Positions 16,240 to 64,000 of a stretch of DNA of 64,000 nucleotides are shown in pieces. The stretch spans positions 26,908,001-26,972,000 of the forward strand of contig NC_087256.1 of the NCBI RefSeq assembly GCF_037042905.1. Direction: 5' to 3'. The notes beneath the pieces were generated by a model. It saw only the letters and a list, made by a program, of their open reading frames with translations. It made no database searches and had not been told where the DNA came from. Origin of the DNA: Lytechinus pictus (taxonomy: Eukaryota). A program made the translations under genes and the position numbers. Position 1 is the stretch's first letter; every line of letters starts with the position of its first letter.

Positions 16240-16519
16240 CACTGTTAGAAAATTTATCCTTAAAATAAAAGAAGTTCCTGCAGCAGAGTCTCGAGAACAC
16301 CTGTAATATTACCAGATTGCGTAATCTTACAGGAAATTGGTATTTGGTGTATGGAACCTTACAAATTTCCTTTAATAAAACGCCCTTTTCCCCTTTTTAA
16401 ACAGAACTGTTCTGTTAAATTGCAGAAAAATTCCTGTTTTAGGAATTTACACAATGATTCTGTTACTGCTTTCTGCAAAATCTTTTTTTTTTCCTGCAAA
16501 ATCAGGGGTTTTTTCAGTG
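16240..16519. mobile_element. CACTG-terminus (EnSpm/CACTA-like) MITE; duplicated near 35469, 44860 and 51412
   Basis: TA-CACTGTTA..CAGTG-TA; the copy ending near 35748 has TAACAGTG. Confidence 0.65.
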
Positions 16520-16842
16520 TAGTTTGTAAAGTTATAAGTAGGCCTATCTATTGACCCTCTGTGGAGCTAATCTATGACGTTGTACATAAGCATTTATATA
16601 ATTATATTGGGGGCCCTACATATGTAATTTGTCCAACTCAAACTTAATTGGAGGACTTTTGATTAGCCCCGATCAAAGAGTTTCAATCCGATATCACGAC
16701 AATTATAAGTTAAACTAATTGCTCATGGGGCGATCCCTTATCAAAATTTTAAACGGGCGGCTGCGGGATGACTGTCAAAATACAAAATTGCCTTGATCTA
16801 TCAAATCCTGGGAGTGTTTCACAAAAAAAGAGTCGCACTTAA

Positions 16843-17210
16843 AGGACAAGTCCACTCCGACAAAAAGTTTGTTTGAATAAAAAGATAAAAATCCAACGAG
16901 TAAAACCCTGAAAATTTCATGAAAATCGCATGTAAAACAAGAAAGTTATGACATTTTAAAGTTTCGCTTAATTTCACAAAACAGTTATGCACATCCTGGT
17001 TGGCTTGCAAATGAGGAGACTGGTGACGTCATCCACTCACTATTTACTTTGTATTTTATTACATAAAATGTGAAATATTCTAATTTTCCCCTCACTGTCA
17101 AGTGAAACAAAGATTAATTCCTCCCTGAACACCTAGAATTATCATTATTCTAATACTATATGGTTAAGTGAAGTTGACCCTTATTGTCAAACCTGCAAAA
17201 ATGAAAACAG
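16843..17210. mobile_element. Truncated Kolobok-like element; duplicated near 36091, 45470 and 52022
   Basis: TTAA-AGGACAAGTCCAC start and the same subterminal motifs as the 10559 element. No matching right end seen. Confidence 0.55.
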
Positions 17211-17576
17211 TGAGTGAGGGACAGTTGTGCATACAACTGTTTTGTGGAAAATAGCTTTAGCCGACATGGTCATTTGACGAAATGGCACTGTCATAACACC
17301 CCCCCCCCTGGATCCACCTATGCAGTTGACGGCGAGAAGAGCGGAGAAGCCAAAACTATGCGATGCATGTTGAAGTGTCAGTCATTTTGACATCGCTCTT
17401 GGATAATGGCCGGTTTAGATTATGGTTCAAGGCGTTTTGAGCACTCATGGTTAAAAACCCTTTTTTTCAACCAAGGATGTTTGATATGCCATTCAGTGTT
17501 TGACAGCAGCTATGAGACAATTTGCTATTTTGCACGCATCCGTTTCTTCGGAGAGCCGAGGCACACACAAACATCC

Positions 17577-17583
17577 TATAAAT
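17577..17583 (+). promoter_or_regulatory. Candidate TATA box in an upstream block conserved across the five plus-strand GPCR copies
   Basis: CCTATAAATA here and at 39812, near 46365 and near 52920. A diverged homolog (CTTATAAAAT, 60488) lies within an alignable block (17355-17615 vs 60310-60520). Confidence 0.45.
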
Positions 17584-18004
17584 ATTTCATTATTTGAGCT
17601 AAATCGTTAATTCGCTAAGGAAACTAGGACGCAGCTTACAGTGACAATTTCAAAAGCACTCAAGACAGTCTAAACACGAATCCAATCGTGTCAATCTTTC
17701 AAATTTGAAATAAAAGTTAACTAATGGAGACGAAGTACTTTGTCATAATTGTAGGTCATCCTTGATGAGAAACTCGAGCGTAACGGTGAAATCAACTGCA
17801 GATATATGAATATAAATAGCTTGGAGATTTTATATATTATATACATATATATATATATAAATGCTACCATGTATATTGTTTTTGAAATAGTGCTTTAAGA
17901 GGTATTTTAACTTTGATTTGGAGGCTTGCATGCCATAGTATTTTTTGTTCTTTCTACTACTGTTCTCCAGAATATCACACTGCAGAAAACATTTTGAACC
18001 GATT

Positions 18005-19123
18005 ATGGAAAATACAACTCTGTTAGATTTTCTCGATGCATCTATTGCCAGTACACAAACCATATACCCTACCACAGATGTACAGGGCATCAACAGTGAT
18101 TCAAAATCAAAATTTTATTCCACGATGACTCCAAGTGCTATATCGGAAACAAATGTCGTTTCTTTCCTTCATCGCGTAATTGTTGCATCCGTCTTGCTCG
18201 TATTCGCATTGGTCGGTCTTTTGGGCAACTCCCTCGTCATCATTTCAGTTATTGTTAGCAAAAACCTACGGACGATCACCAATATTCTGGTCGTCAATCT
18301 CGCTTTCGCCGATATCTTGACAAGTTCCTTTATACCTTTCCAAAGTGTTGGTCTCCTAAGTCAGACAGGAACTTACCCAGTGAACGAGGGGGTCTGCGCA
18401 ACAGTGGCCGCAGTACTCTACACCAGCGTCTGCTGCAGTGCATACACTCTTGTAGCAATAGCATTTATAAGGTGGTATGTCATCACCAAGTCTATCCGAG
18501 GACACCAAGGTCTTCATACTCCCAAGAGAATCATTGCCATAGCTGTCATAATCTGGATATACTCAGGATCAGCTATGGTCCTACCTCCAGTGTTTGGTCT
18601 CGGGACACTCGGCTACTCCGAATATTACAGCATATGTTCTCTAAAAGATGGGCAAACATCCAAAACTTATTACGTCGTACTTCAGGGAACCTTGGCAGCA
18701 GTTGCTCTTCTGATCACTCTTACACTCTACACTTTGATTCTGAGTCATGTTCGTCGACACAATGACCAATTTCGAAACAAGTACGCAACGGATGATGAGA
18801 CCAAGTCCACGTCAGCAAGTACACGCGGAGGCCAAGCTTCTTCATCTGATTCTGGAGGTTCTCATCCACCCATGATCAAGGCAATCAACCAAAAGGAAAT
18901 CGAGATCACTAAGAATCTTTTCATGGTCGTTTGTGTTTTCATGTTCTGTTTCCTAGCCACTGTTGTTAATTTGTACGTCATCCCCGGTTCTAGTGCCGTT
19001 ACTCTGTACACTACTATGATACTGTTAGGGAACAGTGTAGCCAATCCGATCGTGTATGGTTTGAAGCATCCGAACTTTCAGGTGGTCTTCAAGAAAATCC
19101 TAAGCTGTCGATCTGTAGGATAG
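18005..19123 (+). CDS. Intronless class A GPCR, array copy 1 (372 aa from first ATG)
   Basis: Seven hydrophobic segments; GN (TM1), NLAFAD (TM2), Cys at the top of TM3 and in ECL2, IRWY at the DRY position, W in TM4, NPIVY (TM7); N-terminal sequon NTT. Confidence 0.95.
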   Translation: MENTTLLDFLDASIASTQTIYPTTDVQGINSDSKSKFYSTMTPSAISETNVVSFLHRVIVASVLLVFALVGLLGNSLVIISVIVSKNLRTITNILVVNLAFADILTSSFIPFQSVGLLSQTGTYPVNEGVCATVAAVLYTSVCCSAYTLVAIAFIRWYVITKSIRGHQGLHTPKRIIAIAVIIWIYSGSAMVLPPVFGLGTLGYSEYYSICSLKDGQTSKTYYVVLQGTLAAVALLITLTLYTLILSHVRRHNDQFRNKYATDDETKSTSASTRGGQASSSDSGGSHPPMIKAINQKEIEITKNLFMVVCVFMFCFLATVVNLYVIPGSSAVTLYTTMILLGNSVANPIVYGLKHPNFQVVFKKILSCRSVG

Positions 19124-19205
19124 ATTTGTCATAGAAATTAAATCATGGAAGGCTTTCTGTTACTGCTTGACTGACAAATTCTACATCTGACTGAAACGGG
19201 TAGAT

Positions 19206-34528: not shown

Positions 34529-36616
34529 AAAACTTTATTTTTTAATGGCATTTGAAAGATAGGACTTCGTAGCACCTATTAACACCAACATTTTATAGAC
34601 TTTTCAAATCTGTCCCGTTTTTTTTTATACGCACTGTAGTAGCACGGAAATAGAAAGGATGTAAGCGTACGCATCTCGTATATAAAGTATTCAAAACCTC
34701 CGGTAAAACGTACCCCACTTCCATCCGCTTTCATGCGCTAGGCTTCCGATAAACATTCATTTAACATCCCCACTACATACTTCCCAAGTCCGTTTTTATT
34801 CGCTCTGTTTTCGCAAATTTTCGCCACTTTTATCTATTTCTAGAGCGGATAAAAACGGATAAGAGCCACCCCCGAAATGTTGCTCGTCCGCTGTGTCCTT
34901 TTTGCAAACGTTTTGTATCCGTCGGCCAGTGGGACCAGGTTCTAATTCTCATACTGTTGGTTTCGAACGTGCTTCAGAGCTTTGTGTTCAAATTTCACGA
35001 AATATTGTTTTCATCAAAATGGACGTTTTTTTAAGATTTGGGTAGGTGCACGGGTCTCCAAAAAAAATTTCAAAAGTCAAAGTGGTCCTCGAGTAAAAAA
35101 AGGTTGAGAGGCGCTGTCATACATATAGGGGAATCATAGGGGTATCACGTCGCATTCAATTTAGGGCCTACTGTTATACGTATGCACATGTAGGCTATTT
35201 TACGGGGGGGGGGCTAAGTAGTCAAGTTACGGTTACCTTGGCGACAACTGTAATTTTTGATATGATATTGTAAGATAATAATTTCAGCCCAGAAGTAGCA
35301 TAGGTGTAGGGTATTTGTAACATAATAAAGTTCATGTACGTCGTATAGTCGTATAAATAAACGTTTTGTATTGAATCAATAAACCTGATAAAACAGACAT
35401 TCTGACGCGAACCCTCCCCCCCCCCCTATATCCGTACGGTAACCTTCTCGTTTAAAAGGGTTGATTTACACTGTTAGAAAATTTATCCTTAAAATAAAAG
35501 AAGTTCCTGCAGCAGAGTCTCGAGAACACCTGTAATATTACCCGATTGCGTAATTTTACAGGAAATTGGTATTTGGTGTATGGAATCTTACAAATTTCCT
35601 TAAATAAAACACCCTTTGCCCCTTTTTAAACAGACCTGTTCTGTTAAATTGCAGAAAAATTCCTGTTTTAGGAATTTACAGAATGATTCTGTTACTGCTT
35701 TCTGCAAAATATTTTTTTTCCTGCAAAATCAGGGTGTTTTTAACAGTGTAGTTTGTAAAGTTATAAGTAGGCCTATCTTTTGACCCTCTGTGGAGCTAAT
35801 CTATGACGTTGTACATAAGCATTTATATAATTATATTGGGGGCCCTACATATGTAATTTGTCCAACTTAAACTTAATTGGAGGACTTGATTAGCCCCGAT
35901 CAAAGAGTTCCAATCCGATATCACGACAATTAAAATTTAAACTAATTGCTCATGGGGCGATCACTTATCAAAATTTTAAACGGGCGGCTGCGGGATGACC
36001 GTCAAAATACAAAATTGCCTTGATCTATCAAACCGTACTTCAAATCCTGGGAGTGTTTCACAAAAAAGTTTGACTTAGAGTCGCACTTAAAGGACAAGTC
36101 CACTCCAACACAAAGTTTATTTGAATAAAAAGAGAAAAATTCAACGAGCTAAACACTGAAAATTTCATCAAAATCGCATGTAAAATAAGAAAGTTATGAC
36201 ATTTTAAAGTTTCGCTTAATTTCACAAAACAGTTATGCACATCCTGGTTGGCTTGCAAATGAGGAGACTGGTGACGTCATCCACTCACTATTTACTTTGT
36301 ATTTTATTACATGAAATGTGAAATATTCTAATTTTCCCCTCCCTGTCAAGTGAAACAAAGATTAATTCCTCCCTGAACACCTGGAATTATCATTATTCTA
36401 ATACTATATGGTTTAGTCAAGTTGACCCTTATTGTCAAACCTGTAAAAATGAAATATTGTATAAGCAACAAAAAAAAAACAGTGAGTGAGGGACAGTTGT
36501 GCATACAACTGTTTTGTGGAAAATAGCATTAGCCGACATGGTCATTTGACGAAGTGGCACTATCATAACACCCCCCTGGATCCACCTATGCAGTTGATGG
36601 CGAGAAGAGCGGAGAA

Positions 36617-37086
36617 GGGCACACATGAGTATTACAGACCCCCATTCACTCACGTGTTATATCATAGCTCATCAAAAAATCATTAAAAATCAATCCCTCG
36701 ATAGATTTTGCTTTAATTCACTGACATTAGTCACAATTAACAGTACATTAAGACTTGATATGTTAATCAGGTACTTGCCCAGCTCAATCAAAAGTTAAAT
36801 GGCCTGAAATAAGACTAACCATAATTTCGGCCAGTTCATTGCCAGAAAAAACATAACTGCATTGTGGGTAATAATAATTAAAATGAAAGACAAAAATGCA
36901 GTCTAGCCTCCCCAAACGCCTTAATTATGAAAGAGTATGAACATAGCATTATCTCTATTGTTCTTCTTTTGATATACAAACATTTGATCTATTTATAATG
37001 AATTATTTTAATCAATAAAGTCATGTGATCTTTACTTACGCCTGTCCGGCATGCTTTGCGCGGAGATGAATTACTCTCGTGTGCCC
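36617..37086. mobile_element. 470-bp MITE, left copy (GGGCACAC..GTGTGCCC; Sola2-like termini)
   Basis: Imperfect ~20-bp TIR; near-identical direct copy at 39113-39578. Confidence 0.85.
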
Positions 37087-39112
37087 TATACTGAGGGTCA
37101 AACAAAGAAAAGTTGAATATTTTGGTCTCAAAAGAAAGAGTGGGTTCTCCTGAATAGATTGATACCTTGCATTCAATACCTAATCTGACTAAACGTCTTA
37201 AAAGAAAAGAAAACGTCTCATTAGACGCCCCTGATTTTAATGTAAAAATACAGTGTTCCATTCATATATTTTGTGCGCTTCCTATAGGCTATGGTATTGC
37301 AGCTACAAGTTCTACTTGTTTGATGTCAATCAATAGGCTAAAATATATATTGTGTGGAGTTACAACTTCTTGTTAGCATGTTTAATTTTGTTCGAAGTGA
37401 TTTATTACCTTTTTTATTCGCATACAAATAAACAAAGTAAATAAAAGAAAATTGATAACAAACAAAGAGTGTAAGCAATTCTTGTGCTCATATCGCCTCT
37501 CTTCCTCATTATAACTCACAAGTTGGTGGGGGGGGGGGGGTGCTATAGATATATACCATCAACCCCGCCCTGCGTACAAGCTAGAAGGATAGGGTATGTA
37601 CCCCGACTCAGCTCGCCCCCCCCCCCCCCACCCCGCGTAGCTTTCAATGAAGTGAATAGTATTCAAGTGCGCAATCTATGATGTATAACATCTGACTGAG
37701 ACAAGTTTATGTATTTTAGTGTTTTGTTCATCTTTCTTTCTCGGCGTGCTCTAAATATTGAAAATAGGAATCCTTGATGATAATTAGAAGTTATGTATCA
37801 TTTTGAAAACCCTACTTATTTCATTTCACACTCTCAAACCAACCAGATCTGATCTCCTATTGGCAGTAGAAACTCGCATTTATGCATGATAAATGATAAT
37901 AGGCATTGAATATACATTTGAAAGCGTCATTTCAGCATCGTGATTGATAAATGCACCAAATGCCGAGTTATATACTTATCAACTGCTGTTAAACATAACA
38001 TATCACTTTGTATAAAACTGTTTGAAGCATTCTCACCACTGATTTCTAGCAGACGACGCCCAGCCATAGCAACGACAGTGTAGAAGTGTAGTCGCGCTAT
38101 ACTGAGGGTCAAACAAAGAAAAGTTGAATATTTTGGTCTTAAAAGAAAGAGTGGGTTCTCCTGAATAGATTGATACCTTGCATTCAATACCTAATCTGAC
38201 TAAACGTCTTAAAAGAAAAGAAAACGTCTCATTAGACGCCCCTGATTTTAATGTAAAAATACAGTGTTCCATTCATATATTTTGTGCGCTTCCTATAGGC
38301 TATGGTATTGCAGCTACAAGTTCTACTTGTTTGATGTCAATCAATAGGCTAAAATATATATTGTGTGGAGTTACAACTTCTTGTTAGCATGTTTAATTTT
38401 GTTCGAAGTGATTTATTACCTTTTTTATTCGCATACAAATAAACAAAGTAAATAAAAGAAAATTGATAACAAACAAAGAGTGTAAGCAATTCTTGTGCTC
38501 ATATCGCCTCTCTTCCTCATTATAACTCACAAGTTGGGGGAGGGGGTGCTATAGATATATACCATCAACCCCGCCCTGCGTACAAGCTAGGAGGATAGGG
38601 TATGTACCCCGACTCAGCTCGCCCCCCCCCCCCCCACCCCGCGTAGCTTTCAATGAAGTGAATAGTATTCAAGTGCGCAATCTATGATGTATAACATCTG
38701 ACTGAGACAAGTTTATGTATTTTAGTGTTTTGTTCATCTTTCTTTCTCGGCGTGCTCTAAATATTGAAAATAGGAATCCTTGATGATAATTAGAAGTTAT
38801 GTATCATTTTGAAAACCCTACTTATTTCATTTCACACTCTCAAACCAACCAGATCTGATCTCCTATTGGCAGTAGAAACTCGCATTTCTGCATGATAAAT
38901 GATAATAGGCATTGAATATACATTTGAAAGCGTCATTTCAGCATCGTGATTGATAAATGCACCAAATGCCGAGTTATATACTTATCAACTGCTGTTAAAC
39001 ATAACCTATCACTTTGTATAAAACTGTTTGAAGCATTCTCACCACTGATTTCTAGCAGACGACGCCCAGCCATAGCAACGACAGTGTAGAAGTGTAGTCG
39101 CGCTTGCCTATA
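37087..39112. repeat. Tandem duplication of a ~1011-bp cargo unit
   Basis: 37087-38097 is repeated from 38098; identical small ORFs at 37167 and 38178 (offset 1011). Confidence 0.95.
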
Positions 39113-39578
39113 GGGCACACATGAGTATTACAGACCCCCATTCACTCACGTGTTATATCATAGCTCATCAAAAAATCATTAAAAATCAATCCCTCGATAG
39201 ATTTTGCTTTAATTCACTGACATTAGTCACAATTAACAGTACATTAAGACTTGATATGTTAATCAGGTACTTGCCCAGCTCAATCAAAAGTTAAATGGCC
39301 TGAAATAAGACTAACCATAATTTCGGCCAGTTCATTGCCAGAAAAAACATAACTGCATTGTGGGTAATAATAATTAAAATGAAAGACAAAAATGCAGTCT
39401 AGCCTCCCCAATGCCTTAATTATGAAAGAGTATGAACATAGCATTATCTCTATTGTTCTTTTGATATACAAACATTTGATCTATTTTTAATGAATTATTT
39501 TAATCAATAAAGTCATGTGATCTTTACTTACGCCTGTCCGGCATGCTTTGCGCGGAGATGAATTACTCTCGTGTGCCC
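39113..39578. mobile_element. MITE, right copy
   Basis: Direct repeat of 36617-37086. Confidence 0.85.
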
Positions 39579-40232
39579 AGAAGCTAAAACTATGCGATGC
39601 ATGTTGAAGTGTCAGTCATTTTGACATCGCTCTTGGATAATGGCCGGTTTAGATTATGGTTCAAGGCGTTTTGAGCACTCATGGTTAAAAAAAACTTTTT
39701 TTTTAACCAAGGATGTTTGATATGCCATTCAGTGTTTGACAGCAGCTATTAGGAGACAGTTGGCCATTTTGCACGCATCCGTTTCTTTGGAGAGCCGAGG
39801 CACAAATATCCTATAAATATTTCATTATTTGAGCTAGATCGTTAATTCGCTCAAGGAAACTAGGACGCAGCTTACAGTGACAATTTCAAAAGCACTCAAG
39901 ACAGTCTAAACACGAATCCACTCTTGTCAATCTTTCAAATTTGAAATAAAAGTTAACTTGAGGAGACGAAGTACTTTGTCATAATTGTAGGTTATCCTTG
40001 ATGAGAAACTCGAGCGTAACGGTGAAATCAACTGCAGATGAATATAAATAGCTTGGAGATTTTATATATTATATACATATATATATAAATGCTGCCATGT
40101 ACATTGTTTTTGAAATCGTGCTTTAAGGTGTATTTTAAAATTGATTTGGAGGCTTGCATGCCATAGTATTTTGTGTTCTTTCTACTACTGTTCTCCAGAA
40201 TATCACACTGCAGAAAACATATTGAACCGATT

Positions 40233-41348
40233 ATGGAAAATACAACTCTCTTAGATTTTCTCAATGCATCTATTGCCACTACACAAACCATGTACCCTAC
40301 CACAGATGTACAGGATATCACCAGCACTTCAGATTCAGGATTCGATTTCACGATGATTCCAAGTGCTTCATCGGAAAGAAGTGTCGTTCCCTTCCGCCAT
40401 CGCGTAATTGTTGCATCCGTCTTGTTCGTAATCGCATTGGTCGGTCTTTTGGGCAACTCCCTCGTCATCATTTCAGTTATTGTTAGCAAAAACCTACGGA
40501 CGATCACCAATATTCTGGTCGTCAATCTCGCTTTCGCCGATATCTTGACGTGTTCCTTTATACCTTTCCAAAGTGTTGGTCTCCTAAGTCAGACAGGAAC
40601 TTACCCAGTGAACGAGGGGGTCTGCGCAACAGTGGCCGCAGTACTCTACATTAGCGTCTGCTGCAGTGCATACACTCTTGTAGCAATAGCATTTATAAGG
40701 TGGTATGTCATCACCAAGTCTATCCGAGGACATCAAGGTCTTCATACTCCCAAGAGAATCATCGTCGTAGCTGTGATAATCTGGATGTTCTCGGTATCAG
40801 CCATGGTCCTACCTCCAGTGTTTGGTCTCGGGACACTCGGCTACTCCGAATATTACAGCACATGTTCTTTAAAAGGTGGGCAAACATCCACAACTTATTA
40901 CGTCGTACTTCAAGGAACCTTGGCAGCAGTTGCTCTTCTGCTCACTCTTACACTCTACACTTTGATTCTGAGTCATGTTTGTCGACACAATGACCAATTT
41001 CGAAACAAGTACGCAACAGATGATGAGACCAAGTCCACGTCAGCAAGTAAACGCGGAGGCCAAGCTTCTTCATCTGATTCTGGAGGTTCTCATCCACCCA
41101 TGATCAAGGCAATCAACCAAAAGGAAATCGAGATCACTAAGAATCTTTTCATGGTCGTTTGTGTTTTCATGTTCTGTTTCCTAGCCACTGTTGTTAATTT
41201 CGTCATCCCCGGTTCTAGTGCCGTTACTCTGTACACTACTATGATACTGTTAGGGAACAGTGTAGCCAATCCGATCGTGTATGGTTTGAAGCATCCGAAC
41301 TTTCAGGTGGTCTTCAAGAAAATCCTAAGCTGTCGATCTGTAGGATAG
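40233..41348 (+). CDS. Intronless class A GPCR, array copy 2 (371 aa)
   Basis: Same motifs as copy 1; intact ORF. Confidence 0.95.
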   Translation: MENTTLLDFLNASIATTQTMYPTTDVQDITSTSDSGFDFTMIPSASSERSVVPFRHRVIVASVLFVIALVGLLGNSLVIISVIVSKNLRTITNILVVNLAFADILTCSFIPFQSVGLLSQTGTYPVNEGVCATVAAVLYISVCCSAYTLVAIAFIRWYVITKSIRGHQGLHTPKRIIVVAVIIWMFSVSAMVLPPVFGLGTLGYSEYYSTCSLKGGQTSTTYYVVLQGTLAAVALLLTLTLYTLILSHVCRHNDQFRNKYATDDETKSTSASKRGGQASSSDSGGSHPPMIKAINQKEIEITKNLFMVVCVFMFCFLATVVNFVIPGSSAVTLYTTMILLGNSVANPIVYGLKHPNFQVVFKKILSCRSVG

Positions 41349-41430
41349 ATTTGTCATAGAAATTAAATCATGGAAGGATTTCTGTTACTGCTTGACTGAC
41401 AAATTCTACATCTGACTGAAACGCGTAGAT

Positions 41431-43932: not shown

Positions 43933-45955
43933 CAAAACTTTATTTTTTAATGGCATTTGAAAGATAGGACTTCGTAGCACCTATTAACACCAAAATTTTA
44001 TAGACTTTTCAAATCTGTCCCGTTTTTTTTTATACGCACTGTAGTAGCGCGGAAATAGAAAGGATGTAAGCGTACGCATCTCGTATATAAAGTATTCAAA
44101 ACCTCCGGTAAAACGTACCCCACTTCCATCCGCTTTCATGTGCTAGGCTTCCGATAAACATTCATTTAACATCCCCACTACATACTACCCACGTCCCTTT
44201 TTTCCGCTCTGTTTTCGCAAATTTTCGCCACCATTTATCTATTTCTAGAGCGGATAAAAACGGATGGAGCCACCCCCGAAATGTTGCTCGTCCGCTGTGT
44301 CCTTTGTGCAAACGTTTTGTGTCCGTCGGCCAGTGGGACCAGGATCTAATTCTCATATTGTTGGTTTCGAACGTGCTTCAGAGCTTTGTGTTCAAATTTC
44401 ACGAAATATTGTCTTCATCAAAATGGACGTTTTCTTAAGATTTTGGTAGGTGCACGGGTCTCCAAAAAAATTCCCAAAGTCAAAGTGGTCCTCGAGTAAA
44501 AAAAGGTTGAGAAGCGCTGCCATACATAGGGGAATCATTGGGGTATCGCGTCGCATTCAATTTAGGGCCTACTGTTATACGTATGCACATGTAGGCTATT
44601 TTACGGGGGGGGGGGGGCTAAGTAGTCAAGTTACGGTTACCTTGGCGACAACTATAATTTTTGATATGATATTGTAAGATAATAATTTCAGGGTATTTGT
44701 AACATAATAAAGTTCATGTACGTCGTATGAATATAGGATAGTCGTATAAATAAACGTTTTGTATTGAATCAATAAACCTGATAAAACAGACATTCTGACG
44801 CGAACCCCCCCCCCCCCTATATCCGTACGGTAACCTTCTCATTTAAAAGGGTTGATTTACACTGTTAGAAAATTTATCCTTAAAATAAAAGAAGTTCCTG
44901 CAGCAGAGTCTCCAGAACACCTGTAATATTACCAGATTGCGTAATCTTACAGGAAATTGGTATTTGGTGTATGTAACCTTACAAATTTTCTTTAATAAAA
45001 CGCCCTTTTCCCCTTTTTAAACAGAACTGTTCTGTTAAATTGCAGAAAAATTCCTGTTTTAGGAATTTACACAGTGATTCTGTTACTGCTTTCTGCAAAA
45101 TCTTTTTTTCTGCAAAATCAAGGTTTTTTTAAGTGTAGTTTGTAAAGTTATAAGTAGGCCTATCTATTGACCCTCTGTGGAGCTAATCTATGACGTTGTA
45201 CATAAGCATTTATATAATTATATTGGGGGCCCTACATATGTAATTTGTCCAACTCAAACTTAATTGGAGGACTTTTGATTAGCCCCGATCAAAGAGTTCC
45301 AATTCGATATCACGACAATTAAAAGTTAAACTAATTGCTCATGGGGCGATCACTTATCAAAGTTTTAAACGGGCGGCTGCGGGATGACTGTCATAATACA
45401 AAATTGCCTTGATCTATCAAACCGTACTTCAAATCCTGGGAGTGTTTCACAAAAAAAGAGTCGCACTTAAAGGACAAGTCCACTCCGACAAAAAGTTTAT
45501 TTGAATAAAAAGATAAAAATCCAACGAGATAAACACTGAAAATTTCATCAAAATCGCATGTAAAATAAGAAAGTTATGACATTTTAAAGTTTCGCTTAAT
45601 TTCACAAAACAGTTATGCACATCCTGGTTGGCTTGCAAATGAGGAGACTGGTGACGTCATCCACTCACTATTTACTTTGTATTTTATTACATGAAATGTG
45701 AAATATTCTAATTTCCCCTCACTGTCAAGCGAAACAAAGATTAATTCCTCCCTGAACACATGGAATTATCATTACTCTAATACTATATGGTTTAGTCAAG
45801 TTGACCCTTATTGTCAAACCTGTAAAAATTAAATATTGTATAAGCCAAAAAAAAAAAAAAAAAAACAGTGAGTGAGGGACAGTTGTGCATACAACTGTTT
45901 TGTGGAAAATGGCATTAGCCGACATGGTCATTTGACGAAGTGGCACTATCATAAC

Positions 45956-46189
45956 ATTTTATCCAAGAGCGATGTCTAAATGACTGACACTTCAACATGC
46001 ATCGCATAGTTTTAGCTTCTCCGCTCTTCTTGCCATCAACTGCATAGGTGGATCCAGGGGGGGGGGATCCACCTATGCTGGATCCCCCTGGATCCACCTA
46101 TGCAGTTGATGGCGAGAAGAGCGGAGAAGCTAAAACTATGCGATGCATGTTGAAGTGTCAGTCATTTAGACATCGCTCTTGGATAAAAT
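45956..46189. repeat. ~105-bp inverted duplication (hairpin)
   Basis: 45956-46060 is the reverse complement of about 46085-46189 (about one mismatch). Confidence 0.92.
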
Positions 46190-46785
46190 TAAAATGGCCG
46201 GTTTAGATTATGGTTCAAGGCGTTTTGAGCACTCATGGTTAAAAAAACCCTTTTTTCAACCAAGGATGTTTGATATGCCATTCAGTGTTTGACAGCAGCT
46301 ATTAGGAGACAATTGGCCATTTTGCACGCACCCGTTTCTTTGGAGAGCCGAGGCACAAATATCCTATAAATATTTCATTATTTGAGCTAGATCGTTAATT
46401 CGCTCAAGGAAACTAGGACGCAGCCTACAGTGACAATTTCAAAAGCACTCAAGACAGTCTAAACACGAATCCACTCTTGTCAATTTTTCAAATTTGAAAT
46501 AAAAGTTAACTTGAGGAGACGAAGTACTTTGTCATAATTGTAGGTTATCCTTGATGAGAAACTCGAGCGTAACGGTGAAATCAACTGCAGATGAATATAA
46601 ATAGCTTGGAGATTTTATATATTATATACATATATATATAAATGCTGCCATGTACATTGTTTTTGAAATCGTGCTTTAAGGTGTATTTTAAAATTGATTT
46701 GGAGGCTTGCATGCCATAGTATTTTGTGTTCTTTCTACTACTGTTCTCCAGAATATCACACTGCAGAAAACATATTGAACCGATT

Positions 46786-47901
46786 ATGGAAAATACAACT
46801 CTCTTAGATTTTCTCAATGCATCTATTGCCACTACACAAACCATGTACCCTACCACAGATGTACAGGATATCACCAGCACTTCAGATTCAGGATTCGATT
46901 TCACGATGATTCCAAGTGCTTCATCGGAAAGAAGTGTCGTTCCCTTCCGCCATCGCGTAATTGTTGCATCCGTCTTGTTCGTAATCGCATTGGTCGGTCT
47001 TTTGGGCAACTCCCTCGTCATCATTTCAGTTATTGTTAGCAAAAACCTACGGACGATCACCAATATTCTGGTCGTCAATCTCGCTTTCGCCGATATCTTG
47101 ACGTGTTCCTTTATACCTTTCCAAAGTGTTGGTCTCCTAAGTCAGACAGGAACTTACCCAGTGAACGAGGGGGTCTGCGCAACAGTGGCCGCAGTACTCT
47201 ACATTAGCGTCTGCTGCAGTGCATACACTCTTGTAGCAATAGCATTTATAAGGTGGTATGTCATCACCAAGTCTATCCGAGGACATCAAGGTCTTCATAC
47301 TCCCAAGAGAATCATCGTCGTAGCTGTGATAATCTGGATGTTCTCGGTATCAGCCATGGTCCTACCTCCAGTGTTTGGTCTCGGGACACTCGGCTACTCC
47401 GAATATTACAGCACATGTTCTTTAAAAGGTGGGCAAACATCCACAACTTATTACGTCGTACTTCAAGGAACCTTGGCAGCAGTTGCTCTTCTGCTCACTC
47501 TTACACTCTACACTTTGATTCTGAGTCATGTTTGTCGACACAATGACCAATTTCGAAACAAGTACGCAACAGATGATGAGACCAAGTCCACGTCAGCAAG
47601 TAAACGCGGAGGCCAAGCTTCTTCATCTGATTCTGGAGGTTCTCATCCACCCATGATCAAGGCAATCAACCAAAAGGAAATCGAGATCACTAAGAATCTT
47701 TTCATGGTCGTTTGTGTTTTCATGTTCTGTTTCCTAGCCACTGTTGTTAATTTCGTCATCCCCGGTTCTAGTGCCGTTACTCTGTACACTACTATGATAC
47801 TGTTAGGGAACAGTGTAGCCAATCCGATCGTGTATGGTTTGAAGCATCCGAACTTTCAGGTGGTCTTCAAGAAAATCCTAAGCTGTCGATCTGTAGGATA
47901 G
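46786..47901 (+). CDS. Intronless class A GPCR, array copy 3 (protein identical to copy 2)
   Basis: Identical translation in the ORF track. Confidence 0.93.
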   Translation: MENTTLLDFLNASIATTQTMYPTTDVQDITSTSDSGFDFTMIPSASSERSVVPFRHRVIVASVLFVIALVGLLGNSLVIISVIVSKNLRTITNILVVNLAFADILTCSFIPFQSVGLLSQTGTYPVNEGVCATVAAVLYISVCCSAYTLVAIAFIRWYVITKSIRGHQGLHTPKRIIVVAVIIWMFSVSAMVLPPVFGLGTLGYSEYYSTCSLKGGQTSTTYYVVLQGTLAAVALLLTLTLYTLILSHVCRHNDQFRNKYATDDETKSTSASKRGGQASSSDSGGSHPPMIKAINQKEIEITKNLFMVVCVFMFCFLATVVNFVIPGSSAVTLYTTMILLGNSVANPIVYGLKHPNFQVVFKKILSCRSVG

Positions 47902-47983
47902 ATTTGTCATAGAAATTAAATCATGGAAGGATTTCTGTTACTGCTTGACTGACAAATTCTACATCTGACTGAAACGCGTAGAT

Positions 47984-50485: not shown

Positions 50486-52507
50486 CAAAACTTTATTTTT
50501 TAATGGCATTTGAAAGATAGGACTTCGTAGCACCTATTAACACCAAAATTTTATAGACTTTTCAAATCTGTCCCGTTTTTTTTTATACGCACTGTAGTAG
50601 CGCGGAAATAGAAAGGATGTAAGCGTACGCATCTCGTATATAAAGTATTCAAAACCTCCGGTAAAACGTACCCCACTTCCATCCGCTTTCATGTGCTAGG
50701 CTTCCGATAAACATTCATTTAACATCCCCACTACATACTACCCACGTCCCTTTTTTCCGCTCTGTTTTCGCAAATTTTCGCCACCATTTATCTATTTCTA
50801 GAGCGGATAAAAACGGATGGAGCCACCCCCGAAATGTTGCTCGTCCGCTGTGTCCTTTGTGCAAACGTTTTGTGTCCGTCGGCCAGTGGGACCAGGATCT
50901 AATTCTCATATTGTTGGTTTCGAACGTGCTTCAGAGCTTTGTGTTCAAATTTCACGAAATATTGTCTTCATCAAAATGGACGTTTTCTTAAGATTTTGGT
51001 AGGTGCACGGGTCTCCAAAAAAATTCCCAAAGTCAAAGTGGTCCTCGAGTAAAAAAAGGTTGAGAAGCGCTGCCATACATAGGGGAATCATTGGGGTATC
51101 GCGTCGCATTCAATTTAGGGCCTACTGTTATACGTATGCACATGTAGGCTATTTTACGGGGGGGGGGGGCTAAGTAGTCAAGTTACGGTTACCTTGGCGA
51201 CAACTATAATTTTTGATATGATATTGTAAGATAATAATTTCAGGGTATTTGTAACATAATAAAGTTCATGTACGTCGTATGAATATAGGATAGTCGTATA
51301 AATAAACGTTTTGTATTGAATCAATAAACCTGATAAAACAGACATTCTGACGCGAACCCCCCCCCCCCCTATATCCGTACGGTAACCTTCTCATTTAAAA
51401 GGGTTGATTTACACTGTTAGAAAATTTATCCTTAAAATAAAAGAAGTTCCTGCAGCAGAGTCTCCAGAACACCTGTAATATTACCAGATTGCGTAATCTT
51501 ACAGGAAATTGGTATTTGGTGTATGTAACCTTACAAATTTTCTTTAATAAAACGCCCTTTTCCCCTTTTTAAACAGAACTGTTCTGTTAAATTGCAGAAA
51601 AATTCCTGTTTTAGGAATTTACACAGTGATTCTGTTACTGCTTTCTGCAAAATCTTTTTTTCTGCAAAATCAAGGTTTTTTTAAGTGTAGTTTGTAAAGT
51701 TATAAGTAGGCCTATCTATTGACCCTCTGTGGAGCTAATCTATGACGTTGTACATAAGCATTTATATAATTATATTGGGGGCCCTACATATGTAATTTGT
51801 CCAACTCAAACTTAATTGGAGGACTTTTGATTAGCCCCGATCAAAGAGTTCCAATTCGATATCACGACAATTAAAAGTTAAACTAATTGCTCATGGGGCG
51901 ATCACTTATCAAAGTTTTAAACGGGCGGCTGCGGGATGACTGTCATAATACAAAATTGCCTTGATCTATCAAACCGTACTTCAAATCCTGGGAGTGTTTC
52001 ACAAAAAAAGAGTCGCACTTAAAGGACAAGTCCACTCCGACAAAAAGTTTATTTGAATAAAAAGATAAAAATCCAACGAGATAAACACTGAAAATTTCAT
52101 CAAAATCGCATGTAAAATAAGAAAGTTATGACATTTTAAAGTTTCGCTTAATTTCACAAAACAGTTATGCACATCCTGGTTGGCTTGCAAATGAGGAGAC
52201 TGGTGACGTCATCCACTCACTATTTACTTTGTATTTTATTACATGAAATGTGAAATATTCTAATTTCCCCTCACTGTCAAGCGAAACAAAGATTAATTCC
52301 TCCCTGAACACATGGAATTATCATTACTCTAATACTATATGGTTTAGTCAAGTTGACCCTTATTGTCAAACCTGTAAAAATTAAATATTGTATAAGCCAA
52401 AAAAAAAAAAAAAAAAACAGTGAGTGAGGGACAGTTGTGCATACAACTGTTTTGTGGAAAATGGCATTAGCCGACATGGTCATTTGACGAAGTGGCACTA
52501 TCATAAC

Positions 52508-52744
52508 ATTTTATCCAAGAGCGATGTCTAAATGACTGACACTTCAACATGCATCGCATAGTTTTAGCTTCTCCGCTCTTCTTGCCATCAACTGCATAGG
52601 TGGATCCAGGGGGGGGGGGGGATCCACCTATGCTGGATCCCCCTGGATCCACCTATGCAGTTGATGGCGAGAAGAGCGGAGAAGCTAAAACTATGCGATG
52701 CATGTTGAAGTGTCAGTCATTTAGACATCGCTCTTGGATAAAAT
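52508..52744. repeat. ~105-bp inverted duplication (second copy)
   Basis: Duplicate of 45956-46189. Confidence 0.9.
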
Positions 52745-53340
52745 TAAAATGGCCGGTTTAGATTATGGTTCAAGGCGTTTTGAGCACTCATGGTTAAAAA
52801 AACCCTTTTTTCAACCAAGGATGTTTGATATGCCATTCAGTGTTTGACAGCAGCTATTAGGAGACAATTGGCCATTTTGCACGCACCCGTTTCTTTGGAG
52901 AGCCGAGGCACAAATATCCTATAAATATTTCATTATTTGAGCTAGATCGTTAATTCGCTCAAGGAAACTAGGACGCAGCCTACAGTGACAATTTCAAAAG
53001 CACTCAAGACAGTCTAAACACGAATCCACTCTTGTCAATTTTTCAAATTTGAAATAAAAGTTAACTTGAGGAGACGAAGTACTTTGTCATAATTGTAGGT
53101 TATCCTCGATGAGACACTCGAGCGTAACGGTGAAATCAACTGCAGATGAATATAAATAGCTTGGAGATTTTATATATTATATACATATATATATAAATGC
53201 TGCCATGTATATTGTTTTTTAAATGGTGCTTTAAGAGGTATTTTAACTTTGATTTGGAGGCTTGCATGCCATAGTATTTTGTGTTCTTTCTACTACTGTT
53301 CTCCAGAATATCACACTGCAGAAAACATATTGAACCGATT

Positions 53341-54456
53341 ATGGCAAATACAACTCTCTCTGATTTCCTAAATGTATCAATTGCCGTCACGCAAACCATA
53401 TACCCTACCACAGAAGCACAGGATATCACCAGCACTTCAGATTCAGGATTCGATTTCACGATGATTCCAAGTGCTTCATCGGAAAGAAGTGTCGTTCCCT
53501 TCCGCCATCGCGTAATTGTTGCATCCGTCTTGCTCGTATTCGCATTGGTCGGTCTTTTGGGCAACTCCCTCGTCATCATTTCAGTTATTGTTAGCAAAAA
53601 CCTACGGACGATCACCAATATTCTGGTCGTCAATCTCGCTTTCGCCGATATCTTGACGTGTTCCTTTATACCTTTCCAAAGTGTTGGTCTCCTAAGTCAG
53701 ACAGGAACTTACCCAGTGAACGAGGGGGTCTGCGCAACAGTGGCCGCAGTACTCTACATCAGCGTCTGCTGCAGTGCATACACTCTTGTAGCAATAGCAT
53801 TTATAAGGTGGTATGTCATCACCAAGTCTATCCGAGGACATCAAGGTCTTCATACTCCCAAGAGAATCATCGTCGTAGCTGTGATAATCTGGATGTTCTC
53901 GGTATCAGCCATGGTCCTACCTCCAGTGTTTGGTCTCGGGACACTCGGCTACTCCGAATATTACAGCACATGTTCTTTAAAAGGTGGGCAAACATCCACA
54001 ACTTATTACGTCTTACTTCAAGGAACCTTGGTAGCAGTTGCTCTACTGCTCACTCTTACACTTTACACCTTGCTTCTGAGTCACGTTCGTCGACACAATG
54101 ACCAATTTCGAAACAAGTACGCAACAGATGATGAGACCAAGTCCACGTCAGCAAGTACACGCGGAGGCCAAGCTTCTTCATCTGATTCTGGAGGTTCTCA
54201 TCCACCCATGATCAAGGCAATCAACCAAAAGGAAATCGAGATCACTAAGAATCTTTTCATGGTCGTTTGTGTTTTCATGTTCTGTTTCCTAGCCACTGTT
54301 GTTAATTTCGTTATCCCTGGTACTAGTGCAGTTACTCTGTACACTACTATGATACTGTTAGGGAACAGTGTGGCCAATCCGATCATCTATGGTTTGAAGC
54401 ATCCGAACTTTCAGGTGGTCTTCAAGAAAATCCTAAGCTGTCGATCTGTAGGATAG
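53341..54456 (+). CDS. Intronless class A GPCR, array copy 4 (371 aa, mosaic)
   Basis: Same motifs; NPIIY; intact ORF. Confidence 0.95.
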   Translation: MANTTLSDFLNVSIAVTQTIYPTTEAQDITSTSDSGFDFTMIPSASSERSVVPFRHRVIVASVLLVFALVGLLGNSLVIISVIVSKNLRTITNILVVNLAFADILTCSFIPFQSVGLLSQTGTYPVNEGVCATVAAVLYISVCCSAYTLVAIAFIRWYVITKSIRGHQGLHTPKRIIVVAVIIWMFSVSAMVLPPVFGLGTLGYSEYYSTCSLKGGQTSTTYYVLLQGTLVAVALLLTLTLYTLLLSHVRRHNDQFRNKYATDDETKSTSASTRGGQASSSDSGGSHPPMIKAINQKEIEITKNLFMVVCVFMFCFLATVVNFVIPGTSAVTLYTTMILLGNSVANPIIYGLKHPNFQVVFKKILSCRSVG

Positions 54457-54794
54457 ATTTGTCATAGAAACTAAATCATGGAAGGCTTTCTGTGACTGCT
54501 TGACATCTGTGACATCTGACTGAAACGCGTATAAAATATTTTTCATCATAAGTGACAAGAGCCGCAGGCCTAGTGTACGTTGCGCGTTATCTAGACAAAC
54601 TGACTACCTCGGTGTCAGCAAACGCAGTTTTAAACAAGGAACACGCCTCGATCGGTCCACTTGTATTCCTAGCAATGATAAATAGCGTACTCCAAACATC
54701 AACAAATCTGGTACGATTGATGATATCATATGAATTTTATTTTGAATTTGAATTTATTGATAAACTTTATTCACTTGACATGAACATTTTGTTT

Positions 54795-58854: not shown

Positions 58855-59095
58855 GGAGGCGCGATAGCTCAGTCGGTAGAGCGGGGGACTCGTATTCCGG
58901 TGACCCGGGTTCGACTCCCACTTGGTGCGCTAGTGCCCTTTGGTAAGGCATTAATCCTCAGTACCAGGTCCTCCGGAGAGGACCTTAAGCCGTCGGTCGT
59001 CTGGTTGCTTTCTTACAAGCATTCATGCTTTCTTAGCAATCAGGTAAAAAATCACCACCAATCACCACCAAATCTATTTATCTTTCTATCTATCT
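58855..59095 (+). mobile_element. tRNA-derived SINE (second family)
   Basis: A box TAGCTCAGTCGG and B box GGTTCGACTCC, followed by a non-tRNA body (GTGCCCTTTGGTAAGGCA..GGACCTTAAGCCG) and a (TATC)n tail. Confidence 0.8.
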
Positions 59096-60214: not shown

Positions 60215-61664
60215 TGTGTGTGTATATTTCGTATACACATCAGATTTTCATCAGGAGTTAATACTGTTTGTATAAGGGCGAGTACAGCGTAGAATCTGCA
60301 ACTCCTGCAAGTATGCGATGTGCACATCGCTATCGGAGAAAATTATACATTTTAGATTATGTTTTACGGCGCATGAGACCTCACAGCAAACCGTTGAATG
60401 CCCATTTCGTGTTTGATAGCGGTTATCAACAGATAATTGGCTATTTTGGATGCATCGATCTGTTTCTATGGAGGGACGATAATACCTTATAAAATATTAC
60501 ACTGAGTTAATTCGTCGTTTCAATCGAGGCAAATAGCAAGGGCACATATTCAATTTTAAAGGGACTTGAATAAGGGCCATTTTACACGTGAATCTTGAAT
60601 CATCATAGTAATAATAATGATTGCAATTCGTCTTTAGAATCATCGGACCTTTCACACGCTCACTCAAAAACTGTGATTTGAATTAGAATTCCCGAGCGAA
60701 GGTGGTATATGTGTCCTTGGTGTACATTGCCGTTCATTTTTGCAATTTTGCACGGCGGGGACGATTCCCTTTCCATTCCATGAAATTCCGGGCATAATGT
60801 AAACAAAATGAAGGTTGATAACGCATATAAGGGCTACCCCTCTTCCAGAGATAAAAGTTACTTGTAGAATAATTTCAGCCAAAAACCCTCATCATAGTAA
60901 AACATTCGTCTGCGTTTTAACCAAGTCTACACAAAGCAAAGCACGGTTAATATTTTTCAGATTTTAAAGTATTTTTTAAATCAAATGATCATTTTGATGC
61001 CATAAAATTATTTTCAGGATCTCATACACACTTTGTAGGCATGTGAGAAGCATAAACCAACATTCACTCTGATCAATCTTAAAGTAACACATAACACAAA
61101 GTTTATATACTTCACATTGTTTAGCGTAATTTTTTTTTTCTGTTTTGTTTAGCGTAATTTTTATTTTCACAGATAGGTTTTAAGCAGCCAATCAAAATTT
61201 GGTATCAAAGTGACGTCATATGGGCTTTAAATTATGTTCAGTCGATTCTACGCCCAAAATCTACATGTTAAAGTAAAAATATAACACGGACAATAATTTT
61301 GGCGCACTTTCAACTCATTCTGGCCCACTGTGCGACGCCCGTAGGCCTATGCGCAGAACTCCGCTCTATCAACGCTCGAGTCACCGCTAAACCAACGCTC
61401 GCCACCGTTAAACCAATGCTAAAGCTACGCTGGCTTCAGCGGTGCACCGCTAAGGCAACGCCCATTTTTTCGATTTCCCCCCCCCCCCCCAATTTTGTGA
61501 GCGGTGACGAGCGTTGTCGAAATTCGACCCTCTCTCCCTACCGCTCCACGACCGCTCCAACAACTTTATATAATGCATTTGTTGTCGTGCTTTCTACTAG
61601 AGGAGTTCAGAAAATGTGCTGTGCGAGCCAATTAGCTTTGGAAGCTTGCCTGCTATAGCATTTC

Positions 61665-62849
61665 ATGGTGTACAACCTTTCTCCTGAATACGATTACACC
61701 CATAGTGCGGAATATTATATTGCTGATCCGATAATGGAAAAGACAACCTTCCTATATTTCCTAAATGTATCAATTGCCGTCACGCAAACCATATACCCTA
61801 CCACAGAAGCACAGGATATCACCAGCACTTCAGATTCAGGATTCGATTTCACGATGATTCCAAGTGCTTCATCAGAAAGAAGTGTCGTTCCCTTCCGCCA
61901 TCGCGTAATTGTTGCATCCGTCTTGTTCGTAATCGCATTGGTCGGTCTTTTGGGCAACACTCTCGTCATCATTTCGGTTGTCGTTAGCAAAACACTTCGG
62001 ACAATTACAAATGTTCTGGTGGTCAATCTCGCTTTCGCCGATATTTTGGCGTGTTCCATGATACCTTTTCAAAGTGTTGGTCTCCTGAGCCAAACAAGAA
62101 CATACCCTTTGAACGAGGTGGCTTGCGCAACCGTTGCCGCAGTACATTACATCAGCGTCTGCTGCAGTGTATACACTCTTGTAGCAATAGCATTTATAAG
62201 GTGGTATGTCATCACCAAGTCTATCCGAGGACATCAAGGTCTTCATACTCCCAAGAGAATCATCGTCGTAGCTGTGATAATCTGGATGTTCTCAGTATCA
62301 GCCATGGTCCTACCTCCAGTGTTTGGTCAAGGGACACTCGGCTACTCCGAATATTACAGCATATGTTCTTTAAAAGATGGGCAAACATCCAAAACTTCTT
62401 ACGTCATACTTCAAGGAACCTTGATAGCAGTTGCTCTACTGCTCACTCTTACACTTTACACCTTGCTTCTGAGTCACGTTCGTCGACACAATGACCAATT
62501 TCGAAACAAGTACGCAACTGATGAAGAGACCAAGTCAACGTCAGCAAGTACACACGGAGATCAAGCTTCTTCATCCGATTCTGGAGGTTCTCATCCACCC
62601 ATGATCAAGGCAATCAACCAAAAGGAAATCGAGATCACTAAGAATCTGTTCATGGTCGTTTGTGTTTTCATGCTTTGTTTCCTAGCTACTGCTGTTAATT
62701 TCGTTATCCCTGGTACTAGAATTATTACTCTCTATACCACGATGATACTGTTAGGGAACAGTGCGGCCAATCCGATCATCTATGGTCTCAAGCATCCGAA
62801 CTATCAGGTGGTCTTCAAGAAAATCCTATGCTGTCGATCTGTAGGATAG
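61665..62849 (+). CDS. Intronless class A GPCR, array copy 5 (394 aa; ATG homologous to the other copies at 61734)
   Basis: Same 7TM motifs; most diverged plus-strand copy. Confidence 0.94.
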   Translation: MVYNLSPEYDYTHSAEYYIADPIMEKTTFLYFLNVSIAVTQTIYPTTEAQDITSTSDSGFDFTMIPSASSERSVVPFRHRVIVASVLFVIALVGLLGNTLVIISVVVSKTLRTITNVLVVNLAFADILACSMIPFQSVGLLSQTRTYPLNEVACATVAAVHYISVCCSVYTLVAIAFIRWYVITKSIRGHQGLHTPKRIIVVAVIIWMFSVSAMVLPPVFGQGTLGYSEYYSICSLKDGQTSKTSYVILQGTLIAVALLLTLTLYTLLLSHVRRHNDQFRNKYATDEETKSTSASTHGDQASSSDSGGSHPPMIKAINQKEIEITKNLFMVVCVFMLCFLATAVNFVIPGTRIITLYTTMILLGNSAANPIIYGLKHPNYQVVFKKILCCRSVG

Positions 62850-64000
62850 GTTTGTCATAGCAATTAACTCATGGAAGGCTTTCTGCGAGTACTTGATTGA
62901 GTTCTACAGAAGTTCTACACAAGTATAAATCGTATGAAACATTTTATCGCAGAGACTAGAGAATTATTTCGCACATTATGATTTTTTTTTTCTTAATGTC
63001 TGTTTTCTAAGTATGTATATCGTATAAAGAACAAATTTCTGGGAAATTACTCAAAGTATGTTGCATAATAAGAATATTTTTTTGTTAAGTCGTCACTGTA
63101 ATTTATGTTCTATCAGATTCTACAAAAAATAATATTTCTTCACGTGCAAATGCTAAATTTATTTGTCCGGGTGTATGGCTTGCGCCAAAATGATTAAGAA
63201 AAATCTATAGCTATATCTTTGCTATAACGGTGAACGTAACATTACGTCTGAATCGTAAAAGCTTATACAAAAGCTGTAGCCTCCGCCTTGAAAATATGCT
63301 GGAAAGAAGAACACTCAAATTAAAGTTGCAGTCTTAATTAACCTTTCCCAATCAACGCTCTTGCATTAATTTTTTATTATGTTTGATTACCTAACGATTC
63401 GGGGGCAGTATTTAATGTCAATATCCATCAAATGCAACCATGGGTAGTTTCATGTGTTCGAGTTATTACAAATTTGCCCGTCACAAAAATTACTTCTTTT
63501 TGTTCTGATAAAGTGAAATGACATATTCTTTCACAAAACAACCTTCAATCGTGAACGTTTCGAGCCTTTCAACCGAGCGTAAAGTCTTATGCCATGTTAT
63601 ATTACTTTACGGAGTTTAGACACACTTCTCAATAATTTCGAACCGGAACCAAAAGAAAAGAGTCCGTTGCCTGTTTTAGTTGATATACTAAAATTAGTTG
63701 AGTTAGTATTCTATTAAAAAAGGAGTGAACAAAGTCACCAATCCCCCCATGTAGTCATTTTTGTAATCATTAATATTATGCAAAAATTGCCAATCTCCAC
63801 TCCTCCATGTCGATTTTTATAAAGGTATCATATTCGTGATATTCACTCATTGTATTTTCTGCATTTCACTTAACCTGTGCATTTTATATTTTAATTAGTA
63901 ACATTTATTGAGTTATTCAATACGTTATTTATATTTATGTGGCTACAAATGTATCAACATGAAAGATCCATCTGTGGCTGTTACTTATTTGTGCGATTTT

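Follow-up and report, generated by a model that had tools for sequence, protein, structure and literature searches.

The 64,000-nucleotide stretch of the Lytechinus pictus genome considered here (the window; NCBI RefSeq assembly GCF_037042905.1, contig NC_087256.1, positions 26,908,001 to 26,972,000 of the forward strand) contains a 2,962-bp insertion at positions 36617-39578. With a probability of roughly 0.88, this insertion is a non-autonomous DNA transposon of the KolobokP type in the LTDR-(INT)2-LTDR form, in which two LTDRs (long terminal direct repeats) of ~470 bp surround two tandem copies of the element's own 1-kb, non-coding internal region (INT). KolobokP is a lineage of the Kolobok superfamily recorded in seven animal phyla, including echinoderms (Kojima & Bao, 2022, PMC9587614). 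The lineage is already known; the one paper that treats it does not appear to include the family described here. An earlier note on this DNA had proposed a composite transposon made of two MITEs (miniature inverted-repeat transposable elements) with 2 kb of cargo. The composite-like architecture stands, and KolobokP has literally been called composite-like (PMC9587614), but the cargo is the family's own INT, doubled. Below, M denotes the ~470-bp end repeat and U the ~1-kb core, with M1, M2, U1 and U2 as the copies in this element; positions without a contig prefix refer to the window, and C1, C5, C8 and the like are contigs of the window's own genome.

Read on the forward strand, the element consists of M1 (36617-37086, 470 bp), U1 (37087-38097, 1,011 bp, non-coding), U2 (38098-39103, 1,006 bp) and M2 (39113-39578, 466 bp). 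Between U2 and M2 lie a TTGCC pentanucleotide (39104-39108) and a terminal TATA (39109-39112), which closes the internal segment at 39112. The two end repeats are in direct orientation and nearly identical, exactly as the earlier note had placed them, with two substitutions and four indel bases between them (0.43% substitutions). Each starts with GGGCACAC and ends with GTGTGCCC, an inverted match of 8 perfect bp and 16/20 (17/21) overall, so that each has its own imperfect terminal inverted repeats (TIRs; GGGCACACATGAGTATTACA and TGAATTACTCTCGTGTGCCC in M1). The middle 2 kb is a tandem pair in which U1 and U2 differ by five substitutions (0.50%) and one 5-bp indel. As M1 differs from M2 and U1 from U2, a duplication artefact of the assembly is disfavoured. 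On the left, M1 is followed by TATACTGAGG, the start of U1; on the right, GCGCTTGCCTATA precedes M2. The U1-U2 junction reads GTCGCGC-TATA-CTGAGG, where one TATA remains (38098-38101). The TTGCC is private to this copy, being absent from all other copies and from a public contig; this 5-bp insertion may be a repair footprint. Each core copy also contains a G13...C14 hairpin (37525-37632 and 38528-38640), whose G run is among the most variable spots of the family.

The unit occupies a single target site. AGAA is present on both sides of it (36613-36616 and 39579-39582), and the target-site duplication (TSD) can also be read as 5 bp (AGAAG), the element's first base being identical to the base after the TSD. 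Three paralogous sites on the same strand are empty and carry a single AGAA: 17328-17369 (AGAA at 17345-17348), 46108-46149 and 52663-52704. The closest paralogue is the one at 46.1 kb: over 1.8 kb of flank on the right-hand side, identity is 99.07%. The empty-site sequence also has two short local copies in inverted orientation, at 45996-46037 and 52548-52589, and the chance expectation of empty-site matches is 0. The AGAA flanks and the empty paralogues bear out the earlier proposal that the whole 2,962 bp arrived in one insertion by means of its outer ends. None of the public short-read contigs, which break in the repeat, spans the element; what they do show is an abundance of the M/U family in two organisms and a canonical U-M junction free of TTGCC.

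The genome to which the window belongs (812 Mb, 368 contigs) was searched for the family, and 68 loci were taken out for inspection. The first 15 bases of M occur in ~133 exact copies, and the last 18 bases of U in 99 copies at ≤1 mismatch. The order of M and U is invariably direct in the inspected loci. M and U are one repeat family, contrary to the earlier suggestion that the element moves host DNA. M measures 466-472 bp in all copies; family copies are 97-99% alike, and the family is young. In every copy U starts with TATACTGAGG and ends with GTCGC(G)(N)TATA. Therefore, the TATA on both inner flanks, to which the earlier note had rightly drawn attention, is a constant end of the core and gives no clue to a donor site. 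Twenty-seven independent insertions were distinguished: 13 solo M, 11 M-U-M, two M-U-M-U-M and one M-(U-M)3. TSDs of 4 bp are perfect in 20 of these; they are mostly AT-rich, vary from site to site and show a T-N-W-A bias. In one place (C6:2205033-2205070, known from pattern positions) two M 5' ends stand head-to-head, 8 bp apart, the sole non-direct arrangement noticed.

The terminal ~20-30 bases of M also recur, in inverted orientation, at both ends of further elements of 440-470 bp in this genome. Inverted pairs of GGGCACACATGAGTWATTCA ends are found at C1:25175692-25176131 (440 bp), C1:6419059-6419525 (467 bp) and C1:16510296-16511503 (1,208 bp); they probably represent sister KolobokP families, as solo LTDRs or as small relatives.

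The family also forms arrays. One of them, at C1:43490685-43538705 (loci L065 and L066), extends over ~48 kb of M-U and M-U-U units, with M at both extremes and TAGA flanks. It holds ~29 M copies, neighbouring copies being identical, and seven of its units are M-U-U; the U-U junctions with one TATA are those seven and the one in the window element. Other arrays with M at both ends and one TSD are L067 (three units) and L068 (two units), both with TTAT, and L011 (two units) with TGAA. Since they are bounded by M and by a single TSD, the arrays grew from single insertions and not from an older satellite. At L061 (C5:15243000-15252999), abutted M-TATA-M-TATA-M junctions lie beside an older M of 84-87% identity. 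One M of this locus is split by a 4.6-kb insertion, probably another transposon, with a 9-base overlap at the break. At L063 (C5:38820000-38829500), three M copies have identical flanks and spacings of 3.2 and 2.2 kb; the idea that this triplet brackets other cargo was rejected, the locus being a solo M in a ~125-bp satellite with which it was co-amplified threefold.

This organization is that of KolobokP. The published plan is LTDR-INT-LTDR, with LTDRs of ~450 bp (or ~660 bp) that have their own TIRs of 11-18 bp and RR..YY termini, and with TSDs of 3-5 bp that lack strict TTAA specificity; in echinoderm families the LTDRs measure 461-483 bp and the TSDs 4 bp (PMC9587614). The window copy and the 11 M-U-M monomers elsewhere share this plan, the length of M falls within the echinoderm range, GGGCACAC..GTGTGCCC are RR..YY termini within TIRs, and the TSDs are of 4 bp. 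Similar termini occur in published families, in which some LTDRs start with GGGGGCACAC or GGGTGCAC and one ends with GTGTGTGCCC. Solo LTDRs and (LTDR-INT)n-LTDR multimers, each within one TSD, are plentiful in KolobokP (PMC9587614), and they correspond here to the 13 solo M, the three multimers and the TAGA-flanked array. The lineage also includes LTDR-(INT)n-LTDR forms, where a micro-deletion of 3-4 bp leaves one TATA at the INT-INT junction (PMC9587614), as is seen at U1-U2 and in the C1 array.

Two published families come particularly close. KolobokP-1_MeMe has copies of the LTDR-(INT)2-LTDR form, the same as in the window copy. KolobokP-N2_LyPi, from Lytechinus pictus itself (1,904 bp, LTDR of 465 bp, TSD of 4 bp), resembles the monomer found here (~1.94 kb, LTDR of ~465-470 bp, 4-bp TSD). 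In contrast to the published families, the LTDR described here starts with GGGCACACATGAG, which is absent from the 228 consensus sequences of PMC9587614. The LTDR start of the published Lytechinus pictus KolobokP families has no match in the window's genome, so the present family is distinct from them.

Which enzymes might move such an element? No open reading frame (ORF) in M or U gives a Pfam match at E≤1, so the element is non-autonomous, as the earlier note had expected. Coding KolobokP elements carry a DDD/E transposase of the Kolobok kind, marked by C/DxxH and a CCHC zinc finger, and, on the opposite strand and near the 3' end of INT, a His-Me finger (His-Cys box) nuclease (PMC9587614). 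PF05551, the zinc-binding region of this nuclease (His-Me endonuclease zinc loop), is matched 107 times in the window's genome and not at all in the control genomes; the majority of the matches are in intact frames of 143-146 amino acids. Such frames recur with a period of 4,348 bp at C5:35938641-35969261, and with a period of 4,461 bp at C8:21258305-21295988 and on several unplaced contigs. These periodic frames have the look of coding KolobokP elements joined in very long multimers. PF05551 repeats fill the whole of the unplaced contigs C109, C157, C174, C200, C214, C219, C273 and C361.

At two loci the nuclease can be related to the present family. At C8:10172861 and C5:35919336, CTCATGTGCCC-TATA-CTGTGGGTC corresponds, but for one mismatch, to the end of M, TATA and the start of U, and PF05551 matches (open frames of 97-143 amino acids, known by their coordinates) lie 3,472 and 3,477 bp downstream on the opposite strand. 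The gene order is that given in PMC9587614. These loci are likely the candidate autonomous relative, from which U would have derived by internal deletion. A search for a long element through the spacing of exact M ends gave no clear pair at 4-5 kb among the matches listed.

Within each copy the paired end repeats show concerted evolution, a modest new observation. In 10 out of 12 elements, either M has its nearest relative in the other M of its own copy, and the pair has private variants in common. The left-right differences between M copies sum to 39; over 10,000 permuted pairings the mean is 165 and the lowest sum 69, none being as low as the observed one, and none of the 41 informative columns separates left from right M across the 12 elements. 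A plain cut-and-paste composite would not yield this similarity. It is possible, if rather doubtful, that the end repeats are actively homogenised or regenerated, through nuclease-induced gene conversion between the LTDRs or through a circular intermediate with one LTDR. Nuclease-induced repair and circular intermediates have been the subject of speculation for KolobokP (PMC9587614).

Concerted end repeats are also what a retrotransposon would show, and the private variants of paired M copies at first favour a non-autonomous long terminal repeat (LTR) element. In such an element, akin to a terminal-repeat retrotransposon in miniature (TRIM) or a large retrotransposon derivative (LARD), M would be the LTR and U the internal region, solo M would be solo LTRs, multimers would come from unequal crossing-over, and reverse transcription would regenerate the repeats. 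The direct 470-bp repeats with 4-bp TSDs, the solo repeats, the forms of the LTR-I-LTR-I-LTR kind and the lack of left- or right-specific sites in M agree with it. The termini do not: they are GGG..CCC, inverted over 8 perfect and 16/20 bases, and not TG..CA, and they are the same as the inverted ends of the other 440-470-bp elements. The sequence following M is TATACTGAGGGTC and that preceding it GTAGTCGCGCTATA, with no TGG-type primer-binding site (PBS) after M and no polypurine tract (PPT) before it; the solo repeats carry TSDs of their own. Conservation over the initial 30 bases of U is 0.87, one of the lower values within the unit, compared with ~0.96 for M. The end of M and the start of U would moreover be tied, judging by the C8 and C5 loci, to a homing-endonuclease ORF and not to gag-pol, and the model leaves the one-TATA U-U and M-TATA-M junctions unexplained. 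For its ends, the missing PBS and PPT, the weak core edge, the inverted-end relatives and the putative nuclease link, the retrotransposon reading is rejected as highly improbable.

Retrozymes and Penelope-like elements with pLTRs were rejected as well, there being no hammerhead, ribozyme or other credible match to the element in an Rfam scan at E≤10, a result that also speaks against a TRIM or LARD. In the same scan the G/C hairpin matched several miRNA models only below threshold (best 29 bits, cut-off 83), and the flank gave one weak match to a lncRNA model.

A slightly less improbable origin, still very unlikely, would make M a MITE that landed at a TATA of a pre-existing 1-kb satellite, U, the M-bearing arrays then acting as the source of M, M-U-M and M-U-U-M macrotransposons. 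The TATA that borders M on either side within the unit, and the lone TATA where two U meet, do resemble a TSD and its empty site, and the arrays mix M-U with U-U units. Yet every array examined has M at both ends and lies within one 4-bp TSD, and no M-free U array was seen among them. The recurrence of the M end, TATA and U start at the nuclease-bearing loci suggests instead that U came from a coding INT, with which its 5' edge is the only part in common; an INT bounded by TATA is known, too, from an unrelated clam family (PMC9587614).

Least probable of all is the view, put forward in the earlier note, of two independent Sola2-type MITEs that moved on one occasion, as a composite, with 2 kb of host DNA between them. 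The clean empty sites and outer AGAA TSDs would be expected from it, and Sola2 yields AT-rich 4-bp TSDs and short TIRs (PMC3627910). Such short imperfect TIRs and TSDs are shared with KolobokP and do not discriminate, whereas long terminal direct repeats are a feature of this element that has not been described for Sola2. Against host cargo, U is not unique DNA, its end motif occurring 99 times and standing in one orientation beside M in the inspected loci; M-U-M occupies more than 11 distinct sites whose TSDs differ, and the inner TATA flanks are identical in all copies. The ORF putatively linked to M is a His-Me nuclease, a hallmark of KolobokP, and no Sola transposase is linked to M, no search aimed at one having been made. 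No support was found for Sola2, for an LTR or TRIM element or for the capture of host DNA: architecture, the ~450-bp repeats, RR..YY termini, multimers, the one-TATA junction and the putative nuclease link point to KolobokP.

The element nevertheless has likenesses to several known systems. As in bacterial insertion sequence (IS) composites of the Tn9 kind, two direct small elements with inverted ends bracket a middle part, the outer ends are used, and an end element can move or be lost alone. Differently from them, the design is a heritable property of the family and not an opportunistic capture, the end repeats are non-coding, the middle is not host cargo, and KolobokP enzymes are encoded in the middle of the coding relatives. 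TRIMs and other LTR retrotransposons likewise have terminal repeats in direct orientation, short TSDs, solo copies of the repeat, repeat-sharing tandem multimers and concerted similarity between the two repeats of a copy. What separates the element from these is the lack of PBS, PPT and TG..CA, together with its long inverted ends, its putative link to a DNA-transposon nuclease and the presence in the family of INT-INT and LTDR-TATA-LTDR junctions.

For a KolobokP element, the history of this copy can be sketched as follows. A transposase acting at the outermost GGG...CCC ends brought the whole unit into the single AGAA site of one receptor-gene paralogue, with duplication of 4 bp, and the enzymes would have been supplied in trans by coding relatives in the same genome. 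How did the core become doubled? In the scheme of Kojima & Bao, unequal exchange between direct repeats would first produce LTDR-INT-LTDR-INT-LTDR, from which the middle LTDR would then be excised together with one TATA, leaving LTDR-(INT)2-LTDR. The similar divergence of M1 from M2 (0.43%) and of U1 from U2 (0.50%) implies that both duplications are equally old. The core may have been doubled in the donor or just after arrival, a monomer being remodelled at once; the sequence fits both.

Several points weigh against the assignment to KolobokP or temper it. The AGAA target of this copy deviates from the T-N-W-A bias of the family. The local structure is that given by the assembly. The autonomous partner is a candidate drawn from coordinates and short pattern matches alone, and the 18-mer of the U 3' end is absent from the nuclease-bearing loci on C8 and C5, to which the 5' edge of U alone is common.

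Downstream of the element, at a distance of 654 bp, comes the ATG of an intronless ORF for a rhodopsin-family G protein-coupled receptor (GPCR; 40233-41348, forward strand; PF00001 7tm_1, E 7.6e-35), in agreement with the earlier estimate of ~650 bp. Paralogous intronless units of the rhodopsin type, 89-99% identical, are located at 16390-19175, 35617-41400, 45010-47953, 51562-54504 and 61637-62900. The units at 46 kb and 52.6 kb have a 62-bp inverted copy of the promoter-proximal flank, and a tRNA-Thr (CGT) gene is present at 58859-58930. Because the closest paralogue (46.1 kb) is so similar and is empty, the insertion is about as young as, or younger than, the newest GPCR duplication in the cluster. 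It marks one member of a very recent receptor gene duplication and could affect the regulation of that receptor.

With this assignment, an odd-looking structure finds its place in a transposon lineage that has a name, was described recently and is little studied; a false lead, the capture of a host gene by a Sola2 composite, is removed. A family absent from the only paper on the lineage is added to it. Its young copies, together with the intact nuclease frames and very long arrays in the same genome, lend themselves to tests of KolobokP movement and multimerisation. Concerted evolution within repeat pairs bears on the open question of the KolobokP mechanism and fits the published, speculative ideas of nuclease-induced repair and circular intermediates. 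If the end repeats are indeed homogenised or regenerated, this would be the first sequence evidence for a "second replication mode" of KolobokP.

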